Positions 2,140 through 50,935 of a stretch of 64,000 bases of DNA are shown one piece after another. Position 1 is the stretch's first letter; each line of letters opens with the position of its first letter. Source of the DNA: Isurus oxyrinchus (Eukaryota). The translations under genes and the position numbers were made by a program. Under the pieces are notes generated by a model. It was given only the letters and a program-made list of their open reading frames with translations. It was not told the DNA's origin and made no database searches. The stretch covers positions 2,914,001 to 2,978,000 of the forward strand of contig JANJGN010000049.1 of NCBI GenBank assembly GCA_026770705.1. Direction: 5' to 3'.

Positions 2140-2980
2140 TGAAAATGGTTGTCCTTTGCGGTTCTTTCTCGTGAGGTGGCGTTTTTTCCAGGTGCATCAC
2201 TCATCATTCATGGCAGCGACCAAATTGCTGGTTTTATAGCTGCTTTTTGTATTCAATGAGTGGTATTTATTTGTGGGTTAGTTTGGCATTTACCACTCCA
2301 GCCAGTGACGTCAGTGCTCAATCTGCATTGTTCTGTCTGGTTATTCGTCAGTCTCACCTTCGATGACTACATATGTGTTTGTTACCCAAATATGAAGTTG
2401 CGATTTTTCTCTAGGAGAAGTGCCAATATGTTCGCTTTTGTGCTTTAAAAAATTGAACAACAATAAACCAGAGGTACATTGTGCATGAATCAGTGAGGGT
2501 AAATAACAAACTGCATCATTTTGAAGTATAGAATTAGACTTCTACGTTTCATTTTCAGGAATAAGAACTGACTAGATCGATCATGTTTTATCCACTTAGT
2601 TCCATTTCTTGTGTTATTTATCTCAAGGTTTTAAATGTTTCATGCATTCAATTCGTGACTGTGAAATCTGCAGGACTCTCTGGGACCAAGGACAACGGGG
2701 AGAATGAGAAAGGGCCAGAGACGCAGAGTCAGACAAATTCCAACATTTTACTCTTCAGGTAGTCTCTTCCCACCAGGGGCAGTATGATTGTAAACATTAT
2801 AATATTAACACACTGCAGTAATTCATGTTTCGCAGCTTATAAGTTAATTACCCCAACTTTAATGCTGAAGGAAGCAGGGCAATGCAGCTGCTCCTGAGCC
2901 GCTGCATCAACATGTGTACTTATGGATACACCCAGTGTAAGTTGCAAAAGGGACTATGGCATGTGCTGGAATGTTCAATG
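2140..2980 (+). pseudogene. Highly decayed GPR139-like GPCR exon-2 relic (copy 0)
   Basis: tttccaggtgcatcactc at ~2186 is identical to the intact gene at ~37852. SVWLFVSLTFDDYICVC matches SAWLTVAFTFDRFVAIC. There is an ICL3-like stretch at ~2670-2755 and a TM7-like gctgcatcaacatgtgtacttatggatacacccagtgtaagtt at ~2901-2943. Many indels. Confidence 0.75.
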
Positions 2981-3880
2981 ACTCTCCTTTACAAATTTAG
3001 AACGTGGAATGCGGGCTTCACTGACAAAGGCAGCATTAATTGCCCCATCGCTTAATGTCCCTGAGACACGTAATTTTAGCTCTGTTTTTCCCTCTCCACA
3101 TGCGTTGCCAGGCCAGCCGGGCTGTTCTACTTTTTGATTCATATTTCCAGCAGCCACAGTTTTTGGTTTTGCACAATGCGGAATAATTTGAGGAAAAGGC
3201 ACTGCTTGATCCTGCCTTGTTGCATGGCAAACATGACAACGTCTAGAACAATCAGAACTGACTTACCAACCAATCACAACACATTAGCTCATGCAGTACA
3301 CCATGTTGTTCCCTTTGAAAATTAATATTCTTGCGTTTGCCCTGATGAGTGCACAACAGAAAGTTTCGACAGCCTCTCTCTTTTCTCAGCAACACTCATG
3401 TTCAGTACTGCCAAGCATCTACCTATATTCCTCCTTGTGTAACTATACACTGTTCTACTCCTTCATACCATTCTGCAAGCTGACCACCAATTGACATTTT
3501 TAATGCATTTGTTGCTGATTATTCATTAACTGGACTGTTTCCCTCCAAACTTGACAGGCAAGGATTGCAGTGCATGTGGTGTGGCCATCACTTGATAGGC
3601 AGGGTTAGCGGAAGTTTTCAGCTGGGAAGTGGCTAACTGTTCCGATATGACACCCGCAATGCACTGTACAGGCCATGGGACACTGCTCGACTTCCCACAC
3701 TTATGTCCTGAACACTACTCAGAATTTTAATTTTGGTTCACCCCATATTTTGTTCCAATTCACCACATTAGATAAAAGTTGCTTCAGATTCTCCTCTATA
3801 AACCCCAGAAACCAAGCTGCCTCTTCAGATAAAGACATCCAACATCTTCAATACCATCCACTCAATCCCACCAACAGCCA

Positions 3881-3929
3881 CCACCCCCCTCCCCCCCCCC
3901 CCAGCCCACCCCCCCCCCCCCCCCCCCCC
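3881..3929 (+). repeat. poly-C tract (G-rich on minus strand)
   Basis: About 45 nt of near-pure C. Confidence 0.9.
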
Positions 3930-4639
3930 ATTAAAACCCGGACATCTGTACCAATTAGATTTTCGAAACAATTCCCGGAAATGCTTCTTCTTTGGGGGGT
4001 TCTTATTCTCTTGTAATTTTGTCATCCCTCCTCACAAATTGTGACACTGCCAATTTGGAATCACGAAAGAAACGCCCTTAAAATTCTTCAGGGAAATTAC
4101 TTATGTCCAACTTCATATCATTGGAAATAGCACAAGCCAAAAGCAACGATCTGAGCAACTGCCATTTATTCCAAAGTTTCAATTCTGTCTACTCTATTTA
4201 ACCTGCTCTGTCCACTCAGTCGCTTTCAGTTGCCCTTTTTCTCCAAGCTACCTCTTCCAGCTTTCACCTATTCTCATGTGTGCCATTTCGCTTTTACCCA
4301 TTAAATCCCTTCTTCCCCCTCCATTTAACCATTACATGTTCCCTCTTCTTCTTCTAACTTACTCCACCTTTCTGTCCCTGCATCTTCCATTTAATCCACT
4401 GTCTCCACTCTGCCTCTTCCAGTTACTCACCTATCTCCTTTCTTCGTCTTCCCTTTTACGTTATTCTACCCAGTCTGCTTCTTTCAATTCCTCCTCCTGT
4501 CCACCCTCTTTGCATTCAAATTAACCGCCTGTCAGCATTTTGTCGTTTTAATTAAATAGCTGTAAGTAGGCTTCAGAGGATCTGTTGAAGGGAACAGAAA
4601 TTACAACATTAAAATTTCACAATTGCCACCATAACAACA

Positions 4640-4985
4640 TAACAATGTAGAGAGTAGAAACTGGAGTTGACCATTCAACCCCCAGGCTCCCCTTCAATAT
4701 TCAATGAGATCGGCACTGATCTTCTACCTCAGCACTATTTTCTTGCACTACCCCTGTATCCTTTGATGTTTGTAAGATGTTGACATTTATCGATCTCAGG
4801 CTTGAACATACGTGAGGACTGAATCTCTACAGCCCTTTGGGGCAGAGAATTCTAAAGATTCATCACTCAATCAGTGAATAAATTCCTCCTCATCTCAGTC
4901 CTAAATGGCATGTCCCTTATTCTGACATGGTGTCCTCTTTTTCTAGGCAGCCCAGCTTGGGGAAACATGCCATAAGAAATCTATA
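4640..4985 (-). mobile_element. CR1-type 3' tail/UTR fragment
   Basis: Resembles other CR1 3' ends in the window (e.g. 15660-15930). Confidence 0.55.
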
Positions 4986-5593
4986 GTTTTTGCACCTCTC
5001 CTTAATTTTCCTCAGATATGTTCCAGCTATCCAAATATCTGGTTGCCTATAGAATACATAGAGTAATAATACCTTTTTGTTAATATAAAATCTGTTTTTC
5101 GGTAATTATTGGATGTTATAATGAAGGAGAGGCTGATATGCGCTTATGGATTGCTCAAATGGATTTTTAACGCGCATGTCATGTCTATTGAACTTCTTTG
5201 AAATTTCTCAGGAGGAATCTATATTTGTGGAACGTGGCATGAGTATGAAAAGATTACACAAGGAAATTCCGGCATGACTGAACATGGAAGTTTCAAGCGG
5301 GATTTGATTGAGGCTCTTAGGGTTTATAATGGAATTGAACGGGATCAGATAATCTGATTGCAGATGCGTTACCAAGAGTTTGAAGCTTAAAGGGAAAAAT
5401 AGATATTTAAAAAATTTGGCACTGAACTGGAATGATTCCTGCTGATACAAAGGAGTTATGTAGGTATGTTGCGATGTTAATGCATGCATCTGGTAATATA
5501 ATCGTGTTATAGCAGAGGAAAAAGTGCAAGATCCTTTACTAAAAATGAAGCCGTCTCTTAAAATTATGATGGTTCATTTTTCAGTGAGGGGGA

Positions 5594-10279: not shown

Positions 10280-12610
10280 CATTGTTTCCTTAATCTTAAA
10301 ATAATACCGTGGATATTTAATCCCATTTTTTAACTCCTGCCTGAATTTACTGTGTGTCAATGCTTAAATGCACTTGTTGGTGCAAGAACTTAAAAATTGA
10401 GGAGTACTACCTGTTTCTTGGAGAATGAATCTTGGGTCATTGAAATTGGAACCTGAAAAACAATTATTGTTTGTAATTTGAACATAAAAAACGTTTAGAA
10501 CGTACACCATCCATAACAGGATGAAACTGCCCGAAATACGTAAGAGTAACATAATGCACTCGTCCTGTTCTCTAACTCTGGTTCACGCTGATTGGCTCCA
10601 TTGCTGTGGGCCTCGAGTCTCCTTCGGGATCGACTGGCCACTAGAATGTGTCTAACTGTCAGAGCATTCAGTAGTAACAAAAGGAATGATGGAACGCACG
10701 GCGTTGAAATTCGGTCAAGCCAATCATATAGTGTCCGTCCAAGAGAGGTTTAAAATGTTTATTTGATGTTGCACAGCCACTCAACACTGTCAACTGGGAA
10801 CATCGGTTCGTAAGTGAGATAAGACGCAGTGTTTTTGAAACAACTCAAGGCGCAGACTGTTTATATCACTGCCGCTGCCGTTTTCTCTGCAGTATTTTGT
10901 TTTCTGTTTCTGGCAACAAATAGCCACAAACCTATCAAAGGTGAAAGCGACCGTTAACTACACAGAACTCTCTGTGGCAGCAGAAATTAGGATAGAGGTT
11001 ACTGTGCAGCCCGGAGTGGTGGAAAGCACACTGCATCTGTAATATATACCAGCAACCCTGTTTAATAGCACAGCAGTGATAATGACCAGGAGATCCGTCA
11101 CCGCCATGGACACTAGGTTAAGAGTGATGCATCTGGAGAGACCGCATCTTCCTCTGGACAGGATCACAATGAACGCAAAGTTCGCTCTAAGAAAGAGAAA
11201 CAAATATTCAGGAAAATAGGACATTGCTCCCATCAACGGTTTCTTTAATCTTATGCCTTTAGTTTTGAACCATACAAGGGGAGTTTGATAATTCCTAATG
11301 GAGAGATTGATCTGGTAGGAGGTGGACAGTAGCTGAGGAAATTTAACAGGAACAGCTAATGTAAAGGAGCATGGACGAATCGCGGCAATGATTGAGGATC
11401 ATTGGATTGAGAACATACCTTGGAGCTCTACGTACAGTTTCATGAATAAAACCAAAAAAATATCATTCACGAAATGGCAGCAACTGACTGACTGTGAAAT
11501 CATTTTTCAATAAAAATGCTGGTTATATACCCACTTCAGAAAATGTTTTCCCACATATTTCATTATTTCATTTTCGGGTTTGAAATAGCAGTCTGAGAAA
11601 CCTAAACACATATTGTACATGTAGTCAGAATTTCAGAAACTCTGTCCATAGGAGAATGTGTAGTGACCTCTGCCCATGTACTTAATGTCTGGGGTTCTGT
11701 TCGAAGTCAGAATGCCTGGGCCTCTAATTTTAAAAAGCAGAATGTTATGGATGCTGGAAATCTGAAAGAAAAGCCAAAAATTCTGAAAATGATCGACAGG
11801 TGAGCCAGAGCCTGTGGTAAGAAACAGAGTTAAAGTTTTAGATCGATGACGTTTGATCAGGAGCGTCTCAACTTTGTTCACATGTGAAATAACAAATTAG
11901 GCTTTCACAGTCGCATTTCCTTCCTCAGCAACTGTCTCCGGGTTCCCTTCATTCCACATGCATTCCAGCTGAAATCCCACCCTTCCTGTTATGATCACAG
12001 ATATCTCCAAGACATCCAGAACTCCTCAAACCACTGTTGTCGCCACATCCGAAGATGGACTTTCAATTCCTTGTGCCAATACACGCAAGCTCTCAATCTT
12101 CCCATTAAGCAACACGGACTCACACAAGCTCAAAGCTGCCCTTGGCCCTAAGGATTCTTCGCCTCATTCAAAGCTGAAAAAAATAACCTTTCACCTTTCT
12201 TTCAGTTGTGAAGGATTGCAAGTGACAGCTAGTCATGGTTACCAAAACATGTGCGCACTCTTTTTCTGATTCACTAAGCCTCCAAACGATCCATTCCTTG
12301 AATCTCACCCTTTGCTCTTTATTCACAATAGCGTTTTAAATTCCCCTATCTCTGCCTGTTTGCTCTGCCCTCAGGAAACACATCAGCTTCATGCAATTAC
12401 CACCGTTCCTGAATGGCGTTCGATCATAGCTCATTCAACTGAAGATATAGTGAAAGAAAGTCTGGATAACACAGTGATACAAGTCAGCTGCAGTGCAGGC
12501 GACAATGTCCTAAAACAAAAAAGTTGCTCTAATAACTTACCCAGCACACGGACAACACATAGAATAGGATAGTAAGTAGGAAGTACTGGATTGTTTCCCG
12601 GGGAGCGCAT
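10280..12610 (-). pseudogene. GPR139-like class A GPCR pseudogene (copy 1); exon 1 12610..12541, exon 2 11184..~10280
   Basis: Exon 1 MRSPGNNPVLPTYYPILCVVRVL+G|gtaagt. Exon 2 ANFAFIVILSRGRCGLSRCIT..DLL..DRF. In-frame TAG at 10958-60 replaces the conserved Trp, there are frameshifts, and TAA replaces the NPxxY Tyr at 10364-66. Confidence 0.9.
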
Positions 12611-13606
12611 TCTCTGCGAGAAACAAAGTGCTGGAGACAACAGCCACATATCAGCTGCAACTCATTCCTATGACACCTTACTTATACCGAATGTGAATGC
12701 TTCATGAGACAATAACATTGCATCAGCTCAGCGTTAGTCATGGTCACCCAAACAAACAAACCATGGCAGCCAACGTCATAAAACCTTAGCTAAATTATGA
12801 TATAGTTCAATAATGTTACACCATTTAAAGGATAAATAACGCTTTTCTGGCATGTTAAAAATTAAATGTCCACCAGATTTTTTCACGGCATCAAAGGAAC
12901 ATATATTGTTCCCAGGCTCAATCTGTGATAATGTTCGTCTTCAACCATCACATTATCACTGACCACAGTGATAATGGTTGTAATTAGACACATCGACTTG
13001 ACTTCCAGAGCACATGATTCATCCCGCAGTAGGGAGAGCTATAATTGGCAAAATGCAGTCCATTCTGCGGTACATGACTCATAAGCCCGTGAGAGGGCAT
13101 TAAGGCAGGGCATTTGTTGTATTGTGCCACATCAGAGAGGGAACGGCTCCTGATAATTCTCTTGTGACTGGAAGTGGTCAGCCTGCATTGTGTGTGTGAA
13201 ATGAAGACAGAATGATACTGAAATGGCCCGTCCACACCTCCAACGAAGTAATACACAACTTGCAGATGGAAAAAAATGAAGGGATATGAAAACTGTGAAA
13301 CGACGATGGTCATCCGACTCTCCTGAAATCGCTCCATTAGCAAGGAGCATCTTGTGCCGGAGAGGAGGGGAAAAACAGAAGTCAAGCTATATGGCACAGA
13401 GCTGATACACCAGATCACTCATAACACATTGTATTAAATGAATGTTGACTCTCTTCTGTCAACTGAACAAACACAGCATGATGCTGAGTGCAGAACCAAC
13501 AGCACTTACGAGACTTGACACCATTCAGGACAAAGCTGCCCATCATCATGCTTCATTATTCACCCCCACCCCCACCCCGCCCCGGCATTTCCTAATATTT
13601 TTTGGA

Positions 13607-15559: not shown

Positions 15560-17600
15560 TCTATCTGCATTTTATTTCCACGACTTGTTCCCACAATCCG
15601 TAACCTCCCTGCAAATGTCCATTGAATTCGCCTCAAACAATCATTAACACAGAAACACAAGGTCAGAAGAAGGAATTGGTCATTCAACCCCACAAGCCTG
15701 CTCCATCAATCGACAAGGTCATAGCTGATTTGATTGTGGCCACAACTCCATTTCCCTGCCTGCCCCAATAACCTTTTGAATCCCTTTTCGATCAATAATC
15801 TGTCTAACTCCGTTTTGAGTACATGCAATGAACCAGCCTCTACTACTCTCTGGGGAAGAGAATTTCACATACTAACGAAGCTGAGAAAGGAATAACAAAC
15901 TCCTCACGCCAGTCTTGAATGGAGGACTTCTAGTTTGTATCTCGGTTATACATATTGTGGTAACCAGACCCACAATTTCAACACTCACTGAGTAAAGCTT
16001 TTTTTTTTCTCTGATCCCTGTATGAATTATTATATTTTGAGTAAATGGGTAACATTAAATTTAAGTTGAAAAATATTCTCTGTACGGTGTCCATTAAAGC
16101 CTTTCAAAATTCTAAAGAGCCCTCGCTGTTTTTTATTCACTTCTAGGAAAAATCAATAGAGCCAGGCTCTTCATATACTTTCCTATTTGACATTTCTTGT
16201 ATCAACCTGTAAATCTTTGTTTGCACGCTCTCCATACCATGTCTGTCTCCTTATGATATGGCGACCAGGTGCGCACATAGCACCACCAGTCTGTCATAAG
16301 AAAAGTTGCTTTCAGATTTTGAATACATTTGTTACTTTGAAATCATCTTCCAGCTGAAATTGCTGCGAAAACGTCCTTTCTTTTCTTATGGTTTCATTTG
16401 GTTATTTCATTCTACAGGGTGACTTATTAACTTGCTCCCCCAGACACATTTTGACTGTTACCGAGCTTACATAGTATTTTCCAAGAAAAGTGCCACCTTA
16501 TTATTTTCTTAACAGATTGAAGGACATCATAATTAGCTGTGTTAAAATTAACTTGCCAATTACATGCAATGCTACCCACGTTTGTTCATGACTTTTTGAC
16601 ATTCCTTGCAGCTATCCGCTGCATTCACAATCTCCCCAATTTTCATCGTTACCAATTTTGCAAATTGTGCTTTTGATACTGAAGACTAGACAATTACGGA
16701 AAGGCTGGAACAACGGTTTCCCCAGCATAGATCCTTGAGGGAGCCTCTTCCCAACACCTCAGACTTATACATGCTCTGGAATTTCTGCTTTGCATCCACC
16801 CAGAGATCTATTATCCGGAATGTCCCGTGACATCCCGAGTTCAGAATATATTCACTGGTGTGTCATGAAGTACCTGATAGAAGGCCTTTTGGTAATCGAG
16901 ATAAATTACTTCCAAGTAACTTCTCCACTCTGCTTGTTTCCTCTTCAAATACGTCAATGTGTTTGTTCAATAAAGGTGTTCCCTTTCGAAATCCAGTTTT
17001 TTATTAATGCAACATGTTTCTCTTATTCCATTACACACCACCCACATCATCTCCCCGCCCCTCGTCATTTTCTCATTTAACAATGGTTTCAATATTTTCC
17101 CCACTGCTACTATGTTAAAGTGACTGATCCGTTGTTCTTAACATGGTGTATGTGATTGTTTTTTTTAATATAGACATAACATTAGCTATCAAGAAATCGT
17201 CTCGCACATTTTTTGCACCAATGAATTTTTAAATATTTCCAATAGTTCTATCTCTTTCCTAGATTGTTTAAAACTGCTTAGACAGACTCCAACTGCATGA
17301 GGTGTTTGCTTCACTTTGTATTTGTTTTTGTAATTTAACAGCATTCTTCTTATTTTCAAAGTTTCGACATAATTTTTAATTGCATTGTTTCATGTCATTT
17401 CCACCTTATTTCTTTCGGTGGCAAACACGGAAGCCAAATACTTGTTTCATGTTCCTGCCACTTTGCAGCTGTTTTCTGAGATTTTATCCTGTGAATCCCT
17501 TAGTGAACCTGTTCCCATCGATAATTCCTGTACTCTAATATTCTTCTTGATCATTTAATTCTGTTGTTCCTTTATGTCTTCTGAATGGTCTTTTCTGCCC
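15560..17600 (-). mobile_element. Decayed CR1-type LINE fragments
   Basis: Antisense similarity to CR1 RT and 3' regions seen elsewhere in the window. Confidence 0.5.
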
Positions 17601-19219: not shown

Positions 19220-19442
19220 ACAAAAAATGTTTGCAAAACTCAGCAGTTGTGACAGCATTTGTGGAGACGACAGAGTTAACATTTCGATTCTGTATGATTC
19301 TTCTTCAGAGCTCTGAAGAAGTTATATGGACTCGAAGCATTAATACTGTCATTCTCTCCTCAGATGTTGTTAGACATGCTGAGCTTTTCCAGCATTTTTT
19401 TGGGCTTCAGATTTCCAGCACCTGCAGTGTTTTGCTTTTATC
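19220..19442. mobile_element. Palindromic Penelope-type repeat with hammerhead-like core
   Basis: Inverted arms around a perfect centre ttcttcagagctctgaagaa (19301-19320). CTGAAGA...CGAAA on the minus strand and a degenerate version on the plus strand. Confidence 0.7.
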
Positions 19443-21619
19443 ACCGGAAGGATAATGCTTGATAGTGCAGTTAATAACATGAAGTAATGTGATACATTAT
19501 TTTTCCGATATATTTTTGTTTATTTTTTGTGCCCCTTTTAATTTGCTGTTGTTGTAATAATTGCAGGAACGATAGAGTAGCAGATTAATTGGATGATGAT
19601 TTGTCTTTTTCGTGCAACAAATCCTCTGTTACATGTTTATAGACATAGTGGTATGCCTGTGGGGGCACAGCCCAGTGAAAGAGAGCCAAAGCATGAGGAA
19701 AGTAGGTCCTCAAACTTCAAACATTCACCGACACTTAAGGTCCAAACTGTTCCCAGAAGGGTGAGTTGGGTCAATTCACTAAACAGCTAAACTTTGGCAT
19801 CCACTGACAGTCTGAGGTCGAAATCCACATCTCCCACATTAAAACATAAATGCTCAGGTGTAATTGGGGATTCATAGGAATGCATCAGGCCTGAGTCTAA
19901 CGGGCAAGACAACTGGAAACTAACTGACAACTGGCAAAAGCATTGAATGGGCACGGCGTTTATTAAATTTTCTCAAACTCACATTTGGTCAGGATCACAA
20001 AATGAGAAAAGATGTAGCTGGGAGGAAAGTCCGTGTCTGACGTGGATAGAACGAAGATCTATGGTGAACTACAACTTTAAATTAATGTTTAATCTAATTA
20101 TTTTTGTCATTTAACTAATTTAAGAATTAGATGCAGCGAATATTTCACCCCATTCTTTAACTCCTCCCTGAGGTTTTTTTTTTCTGAGGCCCTGCATAAA
20201 TGAACGGATTTATGCAGCTACTCAAGAGCTGAAGCATATATCCATTTTCCTCCAGAATGAATGCAGACTCACTGTAATTTGAACCTGAGAAATAAGTGGC
20301 ATTTGCAACTCGGACGTAGAGGATGGTTATAAAAAACAATAAGTATAAAATGATGAAACTGCCTGAAATGGCTAAGAGTAAAATAGCGAAGCCTCTTTTG
20401 GGCTCTACTGGCCAATAGAATATATTAACGGTCAGAGCATTCAGCAGTAAAATCTGAATGACAGGAAGGCAAGGGGTTAAATTACAGTAAATCCAGTGAA
20501 ATGCAACCCATCCAGCTGAGGTATAGAATGTTGATTTTATACCGCAGAACCAAGGTACATTGTTAATTATGGTCAACGGTTCATGCATAAAATCAAGGAA
20601 AGGATTTTTGATGCAACCCAGGGCGCACACAATCATTATGACTCGGGCCCTGTCCTCTAATTGCAACATTTGATTTTAAACTGGTGGCTGTAAATGCCCA
20701 CAAATTTATCAAAGGTGAAAGCCACCATTAACCAAGCGGTTAATAGCTGCAATGGTTACAACAGAACAAAAACTGCATTCTGACGTGATGGGCAGGAAAC
20801 TCAATGGGAAATAGATACGAGCAATCCGGTTCAATATCACAGTGCTGATAATGAGCAGGAGGTCAGTCACCGCCATAGACACCAGGTAGCAGGTGATGCA
20901 TCTGGAGAGGCCACATCTTCCTCGACATAAGATCGCAATTACTGTTAAGTTAGCTGTAACAGAGGGGGGCAAAGTGACTTTGGGAAAAAAAATGACTATT
21001 AGTCTGGGCGAGAATGAGAAGAAAGAAATTTCCTGTGCCAATGCCCTGAAAAATCATCTGAATTGACAGGTTCTGTTAACATTTTCCAGCTTTGTTACGG
21101 GAAAAGAAAACTAGCCTTTAATCTGAGGGCACTTGTTCTTGTGTTTAAAATAAATATTTTGTTTCAAAATAAGACATGTCAGAAACACCAGAAAGTGGTG
21201 TAAAAAATGAAACGTGAAGGGGAAGAAGAAAACCACGAAACATGTCGAATCCAACACAGGAACATACTATAAATCAAATAAACAAGAATAAATACCACAT
21301 CAGCAAATACCTGCAGACGATATTTAAGGGTTACTGAGCAGCGAACCAACAAAGGTTGTGGCAGCTAATTTGAAAATGGGTTATATATGAGGTTGTAAAT
21401 GGCACATTTCTAATAAACTAGTGTAATATTACTCATTGTTACAAAATTCCGCGTCAACTTGCTCAACATATTTTCAGACAGAAAGGAATGATTGAACAAC
21501 AGGTATTTCCTGAATTTGTGGAACAGATTTATTTTTTCAAGGCTGAACTGATACCACCAAATCCTCTTCCCTATAGCAAGCTGGGATTTCCGTGTTTATC
21601 TGAGCGAGGTCCATGCAGG

Positions 21620-25190: not shown

Positions 25191-25675
25191 TAGGGTAAAT
25201 GTCGTATTTAGTAGGGGAAAATACACTATTATATGCAAAGAAAATCTATAACGGTAAAGGGATTAAACGTCGCAGTTAAATTTGAGAGATTACAACATAA
25301 ATGACGACAACCTATGTCAGTAAAAGCAAGAATTTATATCGTTAAAACAGAGATTTCATGCTGATGGAACAAGCCAGAAAATCAATATTGGAAAGGAGGG
25401 CAATTTGCAGCAATTCAAATGGAGAAATTCTCCAGTTCAAGGAGCTAATATGCTGAGCAGACGTGATACCATGGAATAGTGCCGCTGGTAATTGACAGCA
25501 GTAATGAAGCTAATGATTCCTGTAACTAAAACTAAAACTCAAGTACAATACTTCACCTGAAACCCCGAGAGCTGCAAGGACAGGGTAGTGAATGGCAAAC
25601 AGCAGGCCCTTTGGTGATCCATGCATTTCTGACGGAATCGCTCAAAGCGTTGAGTATTCAGTCAAAGTTTGTCAA

Positions 25676-28699: not shown

Positions 28700-31694
28700 C
28701 ATGCCTGAAGACGGAAAGCATTGAAGTCAGAAACAAGGGTTTTTTTCAAGACTGGCATTGCCTGTTATATCTGCTTACGTTGTAGCTGATCAAAACATCC
28801 TTGCTACATTATCCATTGAGGTGCAATGTGATATCCTCCGCCTGCAGGAGACACATACAGGGAGCGAGAACAACTGCCCAAAAATAACAGGAATGTTCCT
28901 GGTTAATGAAAGACCTCATCGACAATATGGCAGTACTGTATTTGTTAGAGCTGGTTCAGTTGTAGAAACCACTTCGAAAACAGAGGAGGACAGCATCGAA
29001 ATTATAACTGTAGAGCTGAGCAAAGTAGTAGTGACCTCAGTGTACAAGCCACCTGGCACAGATATCAGCTTCTCTAACCCTTTACCCAACTGCACAGTAA
29101 TCCACAGATCATCATTGGAGACTTTAATAGCTACAGTACCCAATGGGGGTACAAGGGGTCTAATAGCGATGGAGAAGCAGTAGAAGAACGGATGGACGCT
29201 AACCAGCTTAGCATGATCCTCGATCCGGAAGTACTCGCCCTTTTCCACTGTGCCCGCTGGAAGTGTAGTTATAACCCAGATCTTGCCATTGTCAGCAACG
29301 ACATTGCTGACATCTGCAAGAAGCTTGTCACAGAGACAAAACCACAGACACAACACCGGCCTATTGGTATCTAGGTAATTGCAGCAGTGTTATCAACTGT
29401 CGTACAATTCAAAAGGTGCTTCAGCTTCAAGAAGGCCGATTGGAACGGCTTCATACGAGCACTTGACTGTAAGGTTAACGCATTAAACCATTATCTGAGC
29501 ACTACAACCTGTTTGCAAAAGCTGTTCAGAAAGCAACTAGAAGGAATATCCTCCGAGGTTGTAGAGCACACTACATCTCTGGTCTCACCAAGGAGAATGC
29601 TGAACTCTACTGGGAGTATGCCTCAATGTTTGAATCTGACCCCTTCTCAGAGGATTCAATACCTACCGGTGAGAGGGTAATATTAAGTATCTCCCAAGAG
29701 CGTCAAACCATCTGGGACACCTTGATAGAGACAACAGTTCTTAGAAAAAAACAGCAAGAAGGCATGGTCTCTCATATGCAAACTTGGAGGCAATCCCAAG
29801 AAAGCTGCTCAACATCCAAATGTGCCTGCAAACCAAGTTGCACACCAATTGCTCCTAAATGGAAAAATCAACAAGAAACAACCAAAAGCACAACTAGATA
29901 GGAAGAAGGACAGCAATGACCCTGGATTCACTGGACCATTCACCAAAATGGAACCATTCACCACGCTGTAAAATGGTATATCTACTCTACAACAGGGGAA
30001 AGCAATTGGTCTTGACAACATAGCAATGGAGCAGATAAAGCATTTTGTACAGGAAGCAAAGAAATGACTCCTACAATTGTTTAACCACTGCCTGGCAACA
30101 CACAAGCTACCTAATATTTGACAGAAGGCACATGTAATAGCACTATTAAAGCCCGTAAAAGATCCCTCAGATCCTAAGAATTCTTGGCCAATCTCACTGT
30201 TTTGCCACACCAATAAGCTGTTTGAAAGCCTGATACTCAATAGGATAGCGCCAACTGTAGATGAGAAGATGATTCCAGAGCAAGCAGGTTTCCACCCCGG
30301 CAAATCAACGAGTCAACTGCTCAACCTCACACAGCATATCTAAGATGGTTTTGAGCAAGGGCTGGTAACAGGTGCTGTTTTTGTAGACCTGTCAGCAGCA
30401 TACGATGCAGTGAACCATAGACGTCTCCTCTGCAAGATCCTAGAGATGACAAAAGATATTCACTTATCAGAGCTGTTAGAACGCATGCTTCAGAATCGCT
30501 GGTTCGATGTTGAACTAGGTGGGAAACGCAGCAGATGGCATATTCAGAAGATTGGTCTCCCTCAGGGAAGCGTGCTTGCACCACTGCTGTACAACATCTC
30601 GAATGACCCACCTATAGACGGTGTAACACACCGTTTCATATATGGTAATGATTTATGTGTCACTGCCCAAAGCACTGTTTTAAGACCGTGGAAAAATCGC
30701 TTTCTGTGGCCTTGGAGGGACGAACATCCTACTATGAAGAAAACCAACTTTGCGCAAACCCTTCAAAGACGCAAGTTTGTGCATTCCACCTCAAAAACCG
30801 TGAAGCCAAATGTCAGCTTAAAGTAACCTGATGTGGAGCAATACTGACGCATTTCGAGCACCCAATTTACTTAGGAGTCACCCTTTACAGGTGCCTCACC
30901 TTCAAGCACCACATCGAAAAGACAAAGGCAAAAGTGAGCACATGAAACAACATTCTGAACAAGCTCACTATCACAAAATGGGGAGCAAGCACGAAAACAT
31001 TGCGAACCAGTACACTTATTCTTTGCTATTCTACTGCTAAATACACCTACCCTGCATGGGAAATATCTACTCATGCTAAGAAGATGGATGCCGTTCTGAA
31101 TGCAAGCTGCCGACGTATCACAGGTTGTATAAAATCAACAAACACCAACAGCCTATATATCCTGGCCGGTATCCCCCCCACTCATATAAGAAGAAAGAAA
31201 GAAAGCAAGAAAGAGCGACTTCGTCAAACATCAGAAGAGAGGCACCCTCTACATGGTCATACACCTACAACCAGCCACCTAAAGTCAAGGAAGAGCTTCA
31301 TGAACAGTATTGTTCCATTACAATCAATCCGACCTGAAGCCCGCATCACCTTGTGGAAACATCGACACTCCAGTCTCGAACAACCCCCAGCGATGGAAAT
31401 TGTACCGGATGAAAGCCTTCCGCAAGGGGCTAACTGCAATAGGGCAACCTGGAAGTGCCTTAATAGGCTTAGGACTGGCGTAGGTCGTTCAAAGGCAAAT
31501 GGGGATATACAGCCAGCTCGACAACTTGTGAATGTGGAACTGAACCACAGACTGTGCAACATCTCCTGCAATACCTACCGCTACGGGAACCCTGCACTGT
31601 TACAGAGCTTGCCGAATTCAACAACAGGCACAAAAATGTGTCCAGATCTGGCTGGGCCATGCACAGACTGTCCGTAGACACAATAAGTAGAAGT
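28700..31694 (+). mobile_element. Near full-length decayed Vingi/Ingi-like non-LTR retrotransposon (APE endonuclease + RT)
   Basis: LQETH, TSVYKPPG and IIGDFN (APE); QAGF, VDLSAAYD, GLPQGSVLAP and FIYGND (RT, YADD degraded); RTSTLILCYS..P.W..S.H, WKCLNRLRTGVGR; 3' tail gacacaataagtagaag. Multiple stops and frameshifts. Clade assignment is from motif recall. Confidence 0.8.
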
Positions 31695-35010: not shown

Positions 35011-35397
35011 TGCACAATAATTGCTTTCCATATGTGCGGTGATCACACGGACTGAAAAAATGATTTGGTTGGGGTTTTGACTGTGTTAATTTTTCGGACT
35101 GGAATATCTCTGATCAGTTCTCTTTTGTGCTGAGACCGCGTCACTCAGCACTAAGGAGCTTGAACCCGCTAATTCATAATGTCCAACGTTCACTTTAATC
35201 ATTGCAACTGCTTTTAAAGCTTTTTATTACCGTTCATGGACAAATAAACATGACATCGTTAGAAAGCCTCAGCTATTTCAGTATTAAACTGATCTCTTAA
35301 AAAAAATCATCCCATCAAAAGACAAGCATACACCTGGTAACAGCTGCAATTATATATTCTTTTCAATCAATATAATTAATTAAAAATAATAATGCAT

Positions 35398-35434
35398 CTA
35401 ATTATGTCCCTGGAGCCTGGCATTTAGCATAAAT
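35398..35434 (+). promoter_or_regulatory. Proximal promoter: homeodomain site + O/E(EBF)-like site + TATA-like box
   Basis: TAATTA 35399-35404, TCCCTGGAG 35407-35415, CATAAAT 35428-35434; similar arrangement in paralogues. Confidence 0.55.
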
Positions 35435-35484
35435 GTGACAGTTTTGCAGAATAGTAGAGAATGCGCTCGAAACTTCTGTCAGAA

Positions 35485-35554
35485 ATGCACGGAGCACCAA
35501 AAGGTCTGGCTTTTGCCATTTTCTATCCTTTCCTGGCAGCTGTCGGGATTCCAG
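35485..35554 (+). CDS. Exon 1 of intact GPR139-like class A GPCR (copy 3)
   Basis: MHGAPKGLAFAIFYPFLAAVGIP+G, donor gtgaag at 35555. Homologous 70-nt exons occur in three paralogues. The in-frame upstream ATG at 35461 is not conserved in copy 4. Confidence 0.85.
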
Positions 35555-36569
35555 GTGAAGTATTGTTGGCAGTTACTACCTTACCGTATCACTGAATAGC
35601 TATTTTAATGGTTCCATCCAGCAGCAACTCTTCCTCCATGGTACAATATGCTTCCTCCATTTAAAGTGATAATTTACCTGTCTTTTATTTACTTTTTAAC
35701 TGAGCACTTTCTCTCCTTATAGCGGGCATAATTGGGCTTAATTTAAAGTATAATTTTAACACTTTAAATATTAATGCTAACTTTCTCAATGTTAACGCTA
35801 TAATTAATTTCTTTTGATGACACGATTTCTCACCTTTAACGGTGTCCTTTCAAACAATTCACCAACATGTTTTTCTTCACCCTACTGGTGTAACATTTTC
35901 CTTTGTAATATTATACTGTCATTCTTAACCAATACCACTCCGCCCCTTTAATTATACAATTCCTACTATTACCATTGCATCACACGTGTAAATATATTTT
36001 CTTGCGTTATTGGCATTGTTGCTGTGGGTAAAGTGTCACATTATTAACCAAATGTAAGCGTAGTTTGATTATGTTATTAGCATTGTTAGTTTTGGTGGAT
36101 TAACACATGGTTATCTCGGTGTACAAATAGCTCTCAAGCGTCTTTTTTTGTATCGACAATAATTAATATCCACAAATACATTTCTGATTTAAATTGTTTA
36201 ACCATTAAATTATTCTCGGTTGAATTTTAGGCATGAATTTATTAACAGAACATTATTCGATATCGATGTTTAACAGAAATCTAAGCTATGTGACAATTAT
36301 CCATTTTCTCAGTCAGTCTGTGTTGTTTTCCCAATCTCACAGTCGCTGTGCTTTTGCTCCCAGTTTCTAACATTCAATAGTTAAGGCCAGCTCTTGCTTT
36401 CCGCATTACTGCTGCTGAATGTTCCAAAATGAGCCCTGCTGGATTCTAGTGTTCTTTCTGTTCCTGACACCAGGAAAGTTCCGGGAATATATCCGTTTCA
36501 CTATTTCATCAACATTACGTGGGGTTGTTTGAATTTCAGCATCTCTCTTATCCGAGTTAAAAAATATTA

Positions 36570-36805
36570 AAGACAAAATGTGCTGGAAAAAGCTCAGCGG
36601 CTGTGGCAGCATGTGTTGAGAGAGAAAGAGGCTTAATATTTCGAGTCTGTATGACTCTTCTTCGGAACAGCAGTCCTATTGAACTCGAAGCCCTAGCTCT
36701 ACTTATCTCTCCACACTTGCTGCCAGGCCGGCTGAGTTTTTCCCAGCATTCCTTTTTTTCCCTTTTAATTCAGATCTCCAATGTCCGCAGCATTTTGTTT
36801 TTTTT
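36570..36805. mobile_element. Palindromic Penelope-type repeat (intronic)
   Basis: Arms tgctggaaaaagctcagc...ggcagc and gctgcc...gctgagtttttcccagca are inverted. Confidence 0.7.
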
Positions 36806-37806
36806 TAAATTAGTATTATATTCAATACCCACTCTCTGTGAAGCTGAACATTAATCCACGGAACATAAGCCAGGATGATGCATTATAGGAAGAGCTTTTC
36901 TCTGATTAAGATCCCCTCTTTTGCCACTCCATTTGGTTCAAATCGAACTGGCGATTCTTTATTCTGTCATAGAGTGTGGTGGAATTGGCAAGGAAAGTGT
37001 TTCTTCTCTATCCCTAATTATCCTTGAACCAATTGGCTTATCAGACCATCATATAGGGCAGTCAATCGCATTGCGGTGAGTCTGCAGTCACATGTGCAGA
37101 CCAAACCAAGTAATGGTAGATGCCATTCTAGTGATCCCAATGAGGTTGTATGATAAACAACAATAATTATTGCATCATTATCGGAAGTAGCTTTCAATTA
37201 CAGATTTCTTATTTAATTAATTCTTCCCGGATTATTTGCCCAGTGATATAATTACTTTGCCACTATCTGCTGGTTGACTACATAAGCAGGCGGCCGGTGA
37301 TTTAACTTGTCTTCGCCAACATGCCCTCGCAAATTAGGGATACGATAATTGTACGTTCACTTCTCGGTGATGCTTTCGAACATGATTATTGCCGTGGATT
37401 CGAGATGTGAGTATTTTTACATATGTTGATCGGACGAGGACGCTCTAGGCCCTTAGTGGGATGTGACCTTTGAGAAGTGCATGTTTTTGTATGTCTTTGA
37501 TTGAACTAACTTCCGATGGCTCCTTGTTTTCCATTATCTTCCATTTTATTATTGTTCACTCTGATGTCTTTACGCCACCTTATTGTGAATAAGGATGATA
37601 ATTTTACTTGCAGAAACAGTGCCCGGAGAAGGAGCCGTAGTTTCCAACTCAATATCACGGATAAAGATACAGATATCAATGAAATTGCTGCAACGCCAAT
37701 GGTTTTGTTTGATGTCGGTTTAATAACGTTTCCTTCCTCGCTGTGTCACACACATACGTTCTCCAAATTTCTTCATTCTCTCTCTGCCTCTCTGTCTGTG
37801 TTCCAG

Positions 37807-38717
37807 CTAATTTGGTGGCCATTGCTATTCTCTCCCGAGGAAGGTGTGGTCTTTCCAGGTGCATCACTCGGTACCTGGTAGTCATGGCAATGGCGGATCT
37901 CCTGGTCATTATTACCGGCGTGATCTTAAACAGGATTGTTGGCATCTATTTCCCAGTGAGTTTCTTGTCCATCACGCCGTTATGCAGCCTTCGCGCCGTA
38001 CTGAACTCTGCAACATTTGGCACTTCTGCCTGGTTAACAGTCGCTTTTACCTTTGATCGATTTGTGGCCATTTGCTGCCAAAAGCTGAAAATAAAATATT
38101 GCACAGAGAAGACGGCGACGTACGTTATATGTGTAGTTTGTACAGTGAATTGTTTCAAATCTTCGTTCTTGTATTTTATATATGAGCCCATGTACATAAG
38201 TAACAATATTCCCTGGTTCTGCAGCGTAGAAATTGCTTTTTATACATCACCTGCATGGGCTGCATATGACCTGATTCTTCACATTTTAATGCCTTGTCTC
38301 GCATTCATTCTAATCTTACTGCTCAATGCTCAGACCGTCAAACGCATTCTAGAGGCCAGTAGAGCCCGCAGGAGACTCCGGACCCAGAGAGATGGAGAGA
38401 ATCAGAGTGACCCAGAAATGGAGAACAGGAGAAGGTCCATCGTCTTACTATTCTGTATCTCGGGCAGCTTCATCCTGTTGTGGATTTGGTTTCTAATTAA
38501 TTGTCTCTATGTCAGAATTGCGAGAGTCACGTATTTCTCTGGTTCAGATTTCAATGGGCTAAATTTTATTCTGGAGGAAACCGGAATAATGCTTCAGCTT
38601 TTGAGTTCCTGCATCAACCCGTTTATTTATGCAGGGACCCAGAGTAAGTTCAGGGAGGATTTAAAGAATGCGCTGAAATTACCATGGATTCGCATTGTAA
38701 AATTTATTCAACAATAG
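37807..38717 (+). CDS. Exon 2 of intact GPR139/GPR142-like class A GPCR (326 aa spliced)
   Basis: Polypyrimidine tract + ttccag acceptor; the phase-1 splice gives P-A-N-L. Seven hydrophobic segments in the spliced protein, with ADLL, TSAWLTVAFTFDRFVAIC and MLQLLSSCINPFIY. Open to TAG; resembles GPR139 (GLPANILT, TSIWITVPLTIDRY). Confidence 0.92.
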
Positions 38718-39289
38718 CAACATGTGCACGTGTGTTTAATTACAGCCTATATCACCTTTCATTGGGACCATCCTGTTCTGCCGGCGGTGGGTCAGGCCGT
38801 GTGCAGATCCACAAGCCACGATATCAAGGACCGTTTTAACAAGCTTGAAAAAAGCTTGAGCCATGATGTGCAGTAAATTAAATTTCGTACTTAATTGAAG
38901 GGCGTTATTTCATTCGTGTCGCTGTTTATCGTTTGAGTAAAATATTACCATTAAAATGACAACACTATGTCGTCTCATCGTTCTCCATTGCTCTAACCGC
39001 ACATCTAGTTCAAGTGTCCATGAAGGGGATAGAGAGGCCCTGTTTAGGGCATTGTGTGCACCCTTGCTCCATACTCTCAGAGAAAGTACCGCGAGAGGAG
39101 CCTTTGGAATCTGGGATCCTATGAAATAGAGGATAACAAGGGCAAGAAGAGACCATTCAACCCCTCCAGGCAATTTCACCATTCATGCATATCGTGACTG
39201 ACCTGCGTCTAAACCAGTTTCTCATTTGTGCTTAGGATCACTTAATATCCAACACTATATACTAATCCATAGATTTGAAGGAGAGGCTA

Positions 39290-46900: not shown

Positions 46901-47052
46901 CAGACTTACACATTTGATTCTCTGCTAACCAGCAGCCTGTCTTAAAAATCATTAATAAACCAGCATGAAGAAGCAAAGAGCATGTCAACTCCCTTCGCTC
47001 ACATACTGGAGGGATAACGTCGGTCAATTGGTTAACCTAGTTAGTTCCAAGT

Positions 47053-47110
47053 TATTGTAGTGGTTAGCACCTACACCAGTTAAGGTGGAGACCCGAGTTC
47101 AAATCTCCCA
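47053..47110 (+). mobile_element. tRNA-derived SINE head / tRNA-like fragment
   Basis: A-box-like gtagtggttagc and B-box-like gagttcaaatc; no complete cloverleaf. Confidence 0.45.
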
Positions 47111-47199
47111 GTACTGAATCGTTACTGCCTTAATGCCTTAGGATCGAAATTGGGTAGCTTTGATATGCTGAATGTCCAACAATGTATGCTATTTGGAGT

Positions 47200-47362
47200 A
47201 ACTCGCATTCGTAGTGAATGGAACCATGATGAACAGAATTTCCACACACACAGGATGTGACGCTGCTGCGCTTGGCGAGTTAATGCTGAATTCGCACATG
47301 CTGAACATGATGAATGGGCACCGAATGTAACTGTGCTGAACTGGAGACGGAATGTAATCAGG
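47200..47362 (+). repeat. Remnant of ~35-bp minisatellite upstream of copy 4
   Basis: ccgaatgtaactgtgctgaactggag (~47321) closely matches the 34.7 kb unit. Confidence 0.65.
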
Positions 47363-47593
47363 AAGAAATCGGCCTGTCACTAGTGCAATTGGCTGATATG
47401 GCCAAAATGCATGCCTACCTATTTTTGTTTTAATGCGGACATTTACCTGTGATCACCTTGTACATTTCAATTTAGATCTGTGTCAGATTCCATGAAAAAC
47501 ATTCCATCCAACTGCAATAAAACAAACACCAGTCCCAGCAGCAGATTCACTAATTTGTTTCTTACAAAATTAATTAAAGTTATTGCAAACCAG

Positions 47594-47626
47594 CTAATTA
47601 TCTCCCTGGTGCCATCAGGTATAAAT
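47594..47626 (+). promoter_or_regulatory. Proximal promoter of copy 4: homeodomain + O/E-like + TATA
   Basis: TAATTA 47595-47600, TCCCTGGTG 47603-47611, TATAAAT 47620-47626. Confidence 0.55.
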
Positions 47627-47675
47627 TTGTCAATTTTTGGTGCAGTGCTGAACGCGCTCAGACCTTCTCATTGAA

Positions 47676-50600
47676 ATGCATGGATTACCAAAAGGCCTGC
47701 TCTTTGCCATTTACTGTCCCGCCATTGCAGCTATCGGGGTTCCAGGTAAAGCTAGTAAGTAGCTGCATGAATTATTGGTGAGCTATATCAGTGCTCCCAT
47801 TTTAGCAGTAGCGCATCTCCATGTAACCGATGTTGTTTTCCAATCTAATGGAATATATTTTCTGTTTTCTTTTCAATTAACTGCCTTAATTTCTCTTCCG
47901 CTATCATTCTTCCACTTTAATGGTATTATCTCTCCATTTGACACAATATTTTCTTCAATTTACCTGCATAATTCCGCAGTATTAATGCTATAATTCCTCC
48001 CCTTCAACAGTCTTACTTAATCCTTTTACCAGCGAAGTATATTTACATTACCTGCATATTTTCAACCCTTTAACTGATTTTCTCGTGTTAAGCATCATTT
48101 TATCACATGAATTGAATAATTTGTCCCAGTTATCACGCCATTTCGAGATGAGTACAATTGGATTGCTCTTTTGGACGTTACTGTGTTTAAATTAATACAA
48201 TATTATCATGATATGAAGGCAATTCTATTGCATGTTTGACAATGCTATTGTGGGGGGATTGCCATTAAGTTATTCTGGTGCAAAGAGTGTTCAATTGTGA
48301 CATTGGTACTGTTCCTGTGGCTACATTTTCAAACCGTGATAACAGTGTAATTGGAGTTCTAATGTGCCATTGTCTGTGACAGAGAGAGGAGTATTACAGT
48401 ATCATCCCTGTGAACACGTAGATCAACTGAGCTACAGACATTGTGTTTGTGAGTGAATTAAGTCGCCGTTTTCACTGTGTGATTGCAACTCAGTTGTATT
48501 GTTGCCACTGTTACTGTGGGCGAATTATGATAGCGTGGTCACTGTGAGTGTAGATCTATTGACTTCGATAATGGGGGGATAATTCCCACATGTACTTCAT
48601 TGATTGAGGTGTGAACACTTTCTGACTGGGTGGTCTTGTGGTGTAGCGGGTAGCGTCTCTGCCTGTGAAGCAGATATTCTGGATTCAAGCCAGGGCCTGA
48701 TGATCTCGGGAGGTGCGGACATAAATGGCTAAATAGGTTGAAAATTAAGCTGCAACTCCTTCCAACACATAGATGACAGCCGCTAAGCCCAGTAGAGGCT
48801 CCTGGTCAGCCAGAAGATGTGGCAGTTGTGGCGCAAGAACCTCCTGACGTTAAAAGGCTGCGCATTCACCTTCTTCCCACGGGATGTACTTCATCGCCAT
48901 CGCCCTCATCGCTTCAACGGGCAATCACTCAACAAATTCCTGAATGATTTCATTGAAAGGAAGCTATTGGGCAGTGAAATGCTCAAAGATGTATAAGTAA
49001 AGTAAAGAATTGTCCATGGATGACTAATTGGCATATGTCTCTCACTCACAGAGCATGGTGTTTCTGCACTCAGTCTACCCCACTCACTTCTTCATCCGGC
49101 TCTCCTCTTCCTCATGCACTATTGCTGTTTGTTCTAAGTTGATGACTGCTGCAGTGGGATTCCCTTCTGTTCCTAGCACGCGGCAATGTCTCGGAATTTC
49201 TCAGCATTAATTGAGGACCCGTAAGTGGCTGTACCCTCTCGGAAAATATATAATATTTTTATTCCAAATATTCGTCCTTGGCTGCACATGGCTGTTATAC
49301 GGACTGTGGAGTGCAGGACGGGGGAAGTGTTGCATCGTGGAAGATTATTTCTCTAAAGGAGACCACGTCAACTGCCAATGGTTCTATTAGTTGAGATCGA
49401 CACCCAAAATTATCAGGTGATTATCAGGTGAAGAGTTCCAACATACTCTGCATCCTGCATAAAATGTCCACCGCATAGTCGGAAGTGCTAATGTTCCAAA
49501 CGCTTCATTCTGTTTGAGAGTATGTTTTACACTGTTCATTACAGACATTTTAAACAGTGAATAAGTTCACAGAATTTCATTTGTAGGACCAACTTCTGAT
49601 CCTCAGTGAGACATAATCCGTGTTCTTGTTAGATTTCACACTTGTTGGATGCTTTATTTGTCTACTTCAATAGTTTCTATAGCTCTTCGATGATGGGTTT
49701 TCATTTTTGTGTGTTCCATTATTCTGTGTTATAGACAAGTTTTGATTTCCTTTTCATTCTCTGTTAAGTTTCATGAGAATATATTTTATTCGCAAACCAT
49801 TGGCTCAATTTCTTTTGAAACAGAATCATTATTTCAAACCCAAAATAACCGCCCATAGAATGAAAGATAATTTCCAACTGAGTATCAAGTCTCGAAGCTA
49901 TACGTTTCACACACAACTGTAAAAAGAATGATTTTGTTTGAAGACAAGCAAGGCATTTTCCTGTTCTCAACCTAACTCACACACATTGTCTCTGTCTCTC
50001 TCTCTCTCCCTTTCTCTATTGCAGCTAATTTGGCAGTGATCATGATCCTGCCTCGAAGAAGATGCGGCCTCTCTGGATGTATCACTTATGACGTGGTGTC
50101 CGTGGTGATGGATCTCCTGGTCATAGTTACAGCTGTAATATTGAACCGAATTGCTGGGATTTATTTCCCATTCAGCTTCCTCTCTGTCACACCAATGTGC
50201 AGTCTCCTTTCTGCACTAACTTTTGAAGCTATAGACAGTTCTGCCTGCTTAACAGTTGCTTTCACCTTTGATCGATTTGTGGTCATTTGTTGCAGGGAGC
50301 TGACACGAAAATATTGCACCGAGAGGATGGAAGCATGAGTAAAAGGAATCGTATCCGCACTGAGCTGTGTAAAAAATGCTTTCTTGTATTTTATATAACA
50401 ACCGAGATACACAATTAAAAATATACCCTGGTTCTGCACTGTAAAAATAATATTTTACAAGTCGCCAGCATGCGCCACATATGACTGGATTTGTTTCATT
50501 GTAACCCTTTTTCTCCCATTCATTCTGATCTTATTCCTAATGCTCTGACTGCCAGGTACATTCTAGCGGCCAATAGTGCCCGCAGGAGACTCTGTATCCA

Positions 50601-50935
50601 GAGTATTGGACAGAATCAGAGTGACCCAGAGATGGAGAAGCGGACAAAGTCCATACTTTTACTTTTTGCCATCTCGGGAAGTTTCATTCTTTTATATTTG
50701 CTCTTTTTTGCAACTATCCTCTATGTCCGAATTGCGAAAGTAATCTATTTCTCAGGATTCACTTCTACTCAAGGAACATTTACTCTTGAGGAAAAAAAGA
50801 TTTATGCTTTAGTTATTGTCCTCCGGTATCAACCCGTTTATTTATTCAGGGACCCAGAGTAAATTCAGGGCCGAGTTAAAGAATGGGCTGAAATACCCAC
50901 TGAACATTTTGATTAAATTATTTAAAATTGGATAG
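47676..50935 (+). pseudogene. GPR139-like class A GPCR pseudogene (copy 4); exon 1 47676..47745, exon 2 50025..50935
   Basis: Exon 1 MHGLPKGLLFAIYCPAIAAIGVP+G|gtaaag; acceptor ttgcag|CTAAT. DRF and INPFIY are present. Stops at 50336-38 and 50396-98; frameshifts at ~50535 and ~50795. Confidence 0.9.
48630..48820 (+). mobile_element. tRNA-derived SINE in intron of copy 4
   Basis: A box tggtgtagcgg, B box ggattcaagcc. Confidence 0.55.

Follow-up and report, generated by a model that had tools for sequence, protein, structure and literature searches.

A birth-and-death cluster of five class A receptor loci in Isurus oxyrinchus, from a receptor family expanded in cartilaginous fishes

A 64-kb stretch of contig JANJGN010000049.1 from Isurus oxyrinchus (the window) carries a cluster of class A seven-transmembrane (7TM) receptor loci, which are named A, B, C, D, and E along it. 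When the protein of the intact open reading frame (ORF) at 37743-38717 was compared with the window by tblastn, exactly five such loci were found, which lie between 2143 and 50935 and occupy both strands. The same five were recovered when all six frames were scanned with a hidden Markov model (HMM) of the family (90 members), and neither search gave any further receptor match in the 64 kb. Since the HMM E-values for B to E ranged from 1e-78 to 1e-156, and A gave three collinear fragments, chance matches can be excluded. The state of each locus was then read from a frameshift-aware alignment to exon 2 of D. One of the five copies (D) is intact and the other four (A, B, C, and E) are pseudogenes that differ in their stage of decay. 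An earlier reading of the window, made from its letters only, had described five paralogous 7TM loci on both strands, one intact and four pseudogenized, and this description was borne out.

The intact gene D lies on the forward strand. Its promoter and short 5′ leader (35380-35484) carry TAATTA, TAATTAT, TCCCTGGAGCC, and CATAAAT, and are conserved among the paralogues. Exon 1 (35485-35554) starts with the ATG at 35485, consists of 23 codons and one base (phase 1), and ends at the donor CCAG/GTGAAG (the slash marks the splice junction). Like the first exons of C and E, it was located by means of the N-termini of annotated shark homologues, to which that of D is 64-74% identical. The intron (35555-37806) is of 2252 bases, in phase 1, and interrupts the first transmembrane helix (TM1); its acceptor AG is at 37805-37806. 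Exon 2 (37807-38717) runs intact to the stop codon, covers the receptor from the second half of TM1 to helix 8, and scored 507.6 bits against the family HMM (E=3.7e-156). By count (23 codons, one base, and 303 codons), the product agrees with the 326 amino acids that the sequence-only reading had given. It may be noted that the searches with D used the exon-2 ORF, 37743-38717, which has 21 in-frame, intron-derived residues at its start. D looks functional: of the 95 covered columns with a conservation of at least 90% among 90 relatives, it retains 90. In TM5 of D (window 38331-38339 region), W179L and P189A alter residues that at least 90% of these relatives have in common (residues are numbered here and below as in P0002, a relative 74% identical to D). 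With these two changes, D may be a receptor with an altered TM5, or a gene that is starting to decay.

The pseudogenes show a graded loss of the same structure. Locus E, on the forward strand, has a conserved promoter (from ~47570; TAATTATCTCCCTGGTGCC, TATAAAT), a first exon at 47676-47745 (MHGLPKGLLFAIYCPAIAAIGVP; donor CAG/GTAAAG), and a second exon at 50025-50935 that is 60% identical to that of D, with three stops and two frameshifts. The acceptor of this exon is ttgcAG/CTAAT, and its terminal stop is at 50933-50935. Locus C lies on the reverse strand. Its first exon (25557-25626, ATG at 25626) reads MHGSPKGLLFAIHYPVLAALGV and ends at the donor CAG/GTGAAG, and its second exon (20104-20953; acceptor ttacAG/CTAAC) is 59% identical to D, with three frameshifts and a deletion of ~20 amino acids of the third intracellular loop. 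The acceptors of C and E conform to YAG/CTAA and stand at the codon homologous to that of D. The promoter of C, which extends to ~25730, is decayed: TATAAAT and TCCCTGGAGCC are retained, and the proximal TAATTA has been lost, the sequence now being TCATCA.

For locus B (reverse strand), exon 2 only was found (10286-11184), which is 56% identical to D and has five in-frame stops and two frameshifts. It is preceded by a polypyrimidine tract and an acceptor AG (11186-11185, ttagAG/CG) at the homologous codon. No first exon of B was found by tblastn, by nhmmer, or by eye. Two weak nhmmer/tblastn candidates, at 13041-13075 and 16878-16897, were rejected, having neither the ATG-CAT-GG start nor a donor. 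Locus A (2143-3007, forward strand) is a deeply decayed relic of the main exon, with 31% identity to D, three stops, and at least six frameshifts; neither a first exon nor an acceptor was recognized for it. Judged from its three collinear family-HMM fragments, which lie in different frames at 2305-2442, 2475-2768, and 2819-2998 (independent E-values 3.7e-07, 3.7e-03, and 5.7e-07), A is a genuine family copy despite its decay. Consequently, the sequence-only statement that four loci have the same two-exon structure stands for C, D, and E, where exon 1, donor, and homologous acceptor are all present. For B the structure is implied by the acceptor only, and A has neither element.

When the window was compared with itself, homology between the copies was confined to exon 2 (66-72% DNA identity) and to a stretch of 190-305 bases that covers the promoter and exon 1; alignment was lost in introns and flanks. 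The Nei-Gojobori method was applied to every pair that can be formed from B, C, D, and E (six in all). Synonymous divergence (dS) was 0.96-1.23, and the ratio of nonsynonymous to synonymous divergence (dN/dS) was 0.27-0.34, also in those pairs in which both members are pseudogenes; as protein similarity was used to guide the alignments, dN is biased slightly low. A dS of ~1 together with a dN/dS of ~0.3 indicates that the copies are old, that they were mostly under purifying selection, and that the deaths came late. In an IQ-TREE phylogeny of the family, D paired with a protein of Stegostoma and E with one of Mustelus (support 100/99 each). Hence, the paralogues D and E predate the split of the shark orders. 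The history that we propose is that the copies would have arisen by duplications so old that only the exons and the core promoter can still be aligned, that purifying selection would have kept them for most of their existence, and that they would then have died one by one, through stops, frameshifts, and the loop deletion.

The stretch upstream of the first exons was compared in the three copies that have one (C, D, and E). All three share a block made up of TAATTA, TAATTAT, TCCCTGG(A/T)GCC, and (T/C)ATAAAT, the TATA element being ~50 bases before the ATG. The columns identical in all three copies numbered 32 of 60 at -100 to -41, 50 of 70 in exon 1, and 13 of 60 at the start of the intron. 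The promoter block is thus constrained, because it is conserved above the level of the intron although dS is near 1. Two kinds of element in it, named by consensus sequence, are putative homeodomain and O/E sites. A typical gene of the cluster is accordingly laid out as a TATA-type promoter ~50 bases before the ATG, a 70-base exon 1 that codes for the first half of TM1 and the short N-terminus ahead of it, an intron of 2-5 kb in phase 1, and an exon 2 for the remainder of the receptor.

To which class of receptor the protein belongs was clear from Pfam. The ORF 37743-38717 matched 7tm_1 with 73.6 bits (cut-off 30.5) and E=2.4e-20, over profile positions 2-260 of 260, and this was the only Pfam family reported at E≤0.01, as found for a G-protein-coupled receptor (GPCR) of class A. 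The odorant receptor family (7tm_4) gave no match for the ORF at that threshold. An AlphaFold model of P0002 (pLDDT, a measure of local confidence, 86.4; pTM, its global counterpart, 0.84) has seven helices (7-33, 41-71, 80-113, 124-148, 172-215, 226-261, and 275-301) followed by helix 8 (303-324), with an N-terminus of ~6 residues, a beta-hairpin in the second extracellular loop (ECL2), and a third extracellular loop (ECL3) of 13 residues. When this model was searched with Foldseek, all of the top 50 matches were class A GPCRs, NTSR1 being first and GPR139 (7VUG) second, at 21% identity. D carries FDRF at the end of TM3, NPFIY in TM7, and the cysteine pair joining TM3 and ECL2 (C83 and C162, at least 90% conserved in 90 members); we take a D-R-Y-type motif, NPxxY, and this cysteine pair to be the class A motifs.

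Conservation is unevenly spread over the fold. Near-invariant throughout the family are SRGRCGLSRC in the first intracellular loop (ICL1), FDRF at the end of TM3, NQSDPEME before TM6, and NPFIY. In 77 close members, mean column entropy was 0.98 bits on the extracellular side and 0.68 bits on the intracellular side (Mann-Whitney p=7e-5). It was lowest in the intracellular loops and the inner helix halves (ICL1, 0.25 bits; inner TM3, 0.45 bits) and highest in outer TM3 (1.33 bits), TM4, ECL2, ECL3 (1.31 bits), and the outer ends of TM5, TM6, and TM7. From a nearly invariant cytoplasmic face and a variable outer side we infer that the members may share a transducer and differ in their ligands.

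The window protein had 2284 database matches at E≤1e-3, counted as 90%-identity clusters. The best 120 of these were all chondrichthyan family members, and 82 of them came from one species, Heterodontus francisci (counted from the table). Identity in the best 120 was 63-74%, except for four longer, fused models at 52-56%; most bore the name 'probable G-protein coupled receptor 139', the rest having other automatic names or none, and none was flagged as the window's own protein. Matches in the ESM Atlas had automatic names only. In an exhaustive search of 50%-identity representatives, the clusters numbered 530 at E≤1e-3, of which 162 remained at E≤1e-10 and 112 at E≤1e-30. The best 150 representatives reach down to E=2.5e-12, and true GPR139 is expected to be weaker than that and to lie beyond them.

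Taxa were named for 30 representatives. Among these were members from sharks (Stegostoma, Chiloscyllium, Hemiscyllium, Scyliorhinus, Mustelus, Heptranchias, and Pristiophorus), batoids (Mobula, Narcine, Hypanus, Leucoraja, Amblyraja, and Rhinoraja), and a chimaera (Callorhinchus). Relatives outside the cartilaginous fishes came from salamanders, coelacanth, and a teleost (34%, 30%, and 32% identity, in that order) and from amphioxus. The possibility of few copies genome-wide, which would have spoken against an expansion, is thus removed by the 2284 matches and the 82 from one species, and the proposed lineage-specific expansion holds in a broad sense, for sharks, rays, and Callorhinchus together. 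With five loci in graded decay inside so large a family, the cluster is a real, textbook birth-and-death array of a strongly expanded receptor family, as the sequence-only reading had it. In many public gene models, a family member has been fused to its neighbour (P0110, P0121, P0001, and others, for instance with zinc-finger domains or at lengths of 554-598 amino acids). Automatic family counts in annotated genomes are therefore unreliable.

The loci had also been called GPR139-like. The nearest characterized receptor was judged against all solved structures, among which GPR142 did not appear. For the window protein, GPR139 was first at 3e-10 and PAR2 next at 1.7e-05; for the family profile, GPR139 was again first (2.6e-18, 69 bits), followed by the PrRP receptor (4.6e-15, 59 bits) and then the TRH receptor. 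A coelacanth-type relative (1.8e-18) and an amphioxus relative (1.8e-21) also had GPR139 as their first solved structure. For P0266, a relative from the Logan assemblies, GPR139 was not the top match. Identity to human GPR139 is ~21% (21-25%). What remains of the earlier name is that GPR139 is the nearest solved receptor, and the orthology that it might suggest does not hold: with ~21% identity, dozens of paralogues per genome, and a clade of their own, the window genes are to be excluded as orthologues of GPR139 or GPR142 on the sequence comparisons made. 'GPR139-like' would then be a label of convenience for a remote relation. When the amphioxus relative was used as query, only amphioxus proteins were returned, with neither GPR139 nor GPR142 among them, and the coelacanth relative returned a conserved gene, here called L-type, and not GPR139.

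This L-type gene was found in three sharks (P0309, P0312, and P0316, with 60-66% identity to the coelacanth protein), and also in sturgeon, many teleosts, frogs, salamanders, a caecilian, turtles, and squamates. In the tree, an L-type clade that includes the three shark sequences (100/99) is sister to a clade formed by a salamander trio and the expanded chondrichthyan family (100/99). Monophyly of the chondrichthyan part is weak (80/60). The trio (P0230, P0271, and P0274, from Pleurodeles, Ambystoma, and Lissotriton) grouped with the expanded family at 100/99 and not with the salamanders' own L-type gene. No other bony vertebrate fell into this joint clade among the database matches examined. 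Both gene types are present in sharks and in salamanders; therefore the founder of the expanded family split from the L-type before the divergence of cartilaginous and bony vertebrates, a timing that rests on an assumed amphioxus root. As far as database matches indicate, the founder lineage would survive outside chondrichthyans only in salamanders. The expanded family would be a separate branch, whose nearest conserved cousin is probably the low-copy 'GPR139-like' L-type of non-mammalian jawed vertebrates. It may be noted that P0312 (Stegostoma) and P0410 (Hyla), two models of the L-type gene in a shark and a frog, carry the name 'transmembrane protein 183A isoform', which suggests that the L-type gene and transmembrane protein 183A are neighbours fused by annotation and thus a possible conserved synteny marker.

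Taken together, these results make it probable that the window holds part of an old receptor family expanded in chondrichthyans, in which four local copies are dead and D is open; the structural and evolutionary parts of this explanation are well supported. What the receptors detect is a matter of lower confidence. A chemosensory role of the family is plausible. Its likeliest use would be as a repertoire for diverse external or diet-derived small molecules or peptides, in some specialized cell type, a possibility to which we give somewhat less than even weight. More tentatively still, the family may be an unrecognized chemosensory family of vertebrates, derived from an ancient gnathostome orphan GPCR, kept in salamanders, enlarged to ~100 genes in cartilaginous fishes, and expressed in sensory cells, whether of the olfactory, taste, solitary chemosensory, or somatosensory kind. 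If this were true, the family would supply the chemical breadth that the small odorant receptor (OR), TAAR, and ORA repertoires of cartilaginous fishes lack.

Several observations weigh against the preferred explanation. Exon 2 of D was in no run on record as RNA, and the six runs that contain it, from two studies, are probably DNA. Contigs of four small runs, whose status as RNA is guessed only, were compared with 35200-39200; there was no contig of D and no joint of exon 1 to exon 2. Only two contigs in these runs were at least 99% alike (one each in X8 and X10), no listed piece at that level being on the D exons, and most contigs fell on the intron repeat of D. Over conserved parts of exon 2 there were only pieces 85-95% alike, which may be transcripts of paralogues or DNA. 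In a catshark study, the 50 most abundant and specific genes of a 'brain & olfactory epithelium' library include no GPCR (PMC11979771). D itself is changed at five positions that are at least 90% conserved (K165E, W179L, P189A, L199Q, and Y315L), and only eight of 77 close relatives have as few conserved columns; D, though intact, is mildly deviant and may therefore itself be drifting. Variability of the extracellular side is common to many GPCR families and is weak evidence for a sensory repertoire. The orthologue-like partners of D and E in other shark orders point to a turnover slower than in typical, fast-evolving chemoreceptor clades. Finally, the tree was rooted on three amphioxus proteins only and contains neither true GPR139 nor true GPR142.

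A narrower proposal, which follows the sensory use inferred in the sequence-only reading, is that the family is an olfactory repertoire, with one gene per olfactory sensory neuron and an OR-style promoter (homeodomain and O/E (EBF) sites), which would offset the small number of classical ORs in sharks. The large size of the family, its tandem clusters, the death of four of the five local copies, and the variable, putative pocket side would fit this, as would the promoter block, which stands at a fixed distance in all three exon-1 modules found and exceeds the intron in conservation. ORs are very few in sharks (PMC11979771, PMC8455134): two ORs and six OR-like genes are given for the catshark in PMC11979771, and PMC8455134 speaks of a 'relative paucity' of GPCRs in cartilaginous fishes. 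The same catshark text, however, describes V2Rs as the main olfactory family, and the lack of any GPCR in its top 50 olfactory-specific genes (PMC11979771) also speaks against the proposal, though single receptors would be too rare for such a list. Moreover, D was not seen in the RNA runs on record, the putative O/E-like site agrees with the palindromic consensus only in part, and Pfam gives 7tm_1 only and not the odorant receptor family. On balance, we regard an olfactory repertoire as doubtful.

It is also unlikely, in our estimate, that the receptors work in internal signalling, within the brain or in endocrine or immune cells, with endogenous amino acids or peptides as ligands, as for GPR139, and with the copies reflecting subfunctionalization or an immune-type diversification. 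GPR139 is the nearest solved receptor, the peptide receptors NTSR1, PrRPR, and TRHR come next, and some automatic database names are chemokine-receptor-like or GPR15-like; the age of the paralogues, their orthologue-like partners across orders, and a dN/dS of ~0.3 would suit such a role as well. However, a single species has more than 80 distinct members, and the local fraction of pseudogenes is high, both of which are unusual for receptors of endogenous ligands; the similarity to GPR139 is only ~21-25%. A spread of the copies by a mobile element or by retroposition, which would make them largely non-functional passengers and the 'family' a by-product of annotation, is very improbable and here largely refuted: remains of a LINE-type (long interspersed nuclear element) reverse transcriptase do lie between the loci (28.7-31.7 kb), but the copies keep their intron, splice sites, and own promoter and hence are not retrocopies, no flanking homology between them points to a shared carrier element, and a dN/dS of ~0.3 means long purifying selection.

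Besides the receptor loci, the window contains several other features. Decayed ORFs of a LINE-type retroelement lie at 28758-31677 (forward strand), between C and D; within them, 30410-30826 matched RVT_1 with E=3.8e-05 and 23.9 bits, below the Pfam cut-off of 29.6. A dispersed repeat is present in the intron of D (36540-36807), on which many contigs of the four runs pile up, 85-95% alike and continuing into unlike sequence; it is 69% alike to 61874-62033 on the opposite strand. Palindromes in perfect register were observed at 61863-62035 (83% identity to its own reverse complement) and 19222-19400 (72%). Collinear direct repeats ~2.8 kb apart (57681-58283 and 60520-61117, 67%; 58578-58701 and 61391-61515, 72%) lie downstream of the receptor cluster and look like an old local duplication. 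The low-complexity, A/T-rich stretch 54921-55491 is not a gene; the long ORFs that it yields on either strand are spurious and contain runs of K, I, L, and M.

No published account of a GPR139-like expansion in sharks or other cartilaginous fishes was found in a literature search, and two preprints held nothing relevant to it. The family is annotated in public gene models across Chondrichthyes and yet appears undescribed in searchable papers. Sharks are known for chemical sensing. If expression in sensory cells were true, this would be a new chemoreceptor family of vertebrates, and the account of smell and taste in cartilaginous fishes would change; if the family is not sensory, it would still be among the largest unexplained GPCR expansions in vertebrates. 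Dozens of class A members per genome in sharks, rays, and chimaeras stand against the paucity of GPCRs and ORs reported in PMC8455134 and PMC11979771. To this the window cluster contributes a conserved promoter, a clean model of a gene with two exons, and a dated succession of gene losses.

The known system nearest in score is GPR139, a human orphan class A receptor (PDB 7VUG, 9M42). GPR139 and GPR142 are activated by aromatic amino acids (L-Trp, L-Phe), and GPR139 is single-copy in mammals. Among solved receptors, it scores best with both the window protein and the family profile, and the features that the alignment shows in common are helix 8, a short N-terminus, and, where TM3 ends, a D-R-aromatic motif with (A/V)(I/V)C after it. 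The two differ in that identity is ~21%, with a small margin over other peptide receptors (69 vs 59 bits), and in that GPR139 has DRY and NFFLY, whereas the expanded family has DRF and NPFIY, is without the TM6 proline, and has dozens of members per genome. In the part available, PMC12208981 describes GPR139 as highly conserved across vertebrates and does not mention a chondrichthyan expansion. Closer to the family is the L-type (Latimeria XP_005988539 type), a sister clade at 100/99 with ~30% identity to the window protein, in the same length class of ~325-345 amino acids and with the same automatic name, 'probable GPR139'. It differs in being a separate, non-expanded paralogue, present from sharks to turtles and lizards with one or two proteins per species among the best 120 matches.

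In its organization, the family can be compared with the OR, TAAR, and V1R/ORA families and with expansions of the MRGPR type. Unlike these, the window family has no sequence membership in any of them (7tm_1 only), an intron in TM1 divides its coding region, and its turnover looks slower, some paralogues being common to several shark orders. Like them, it consists of class A 7TM genes that stand in tandem clusters, its paralogues are numerous and its pseudogenes frequent, and it combines a variable extracellular side, putatively that of the ligand pocket, with a conserved cytoplasmic face.

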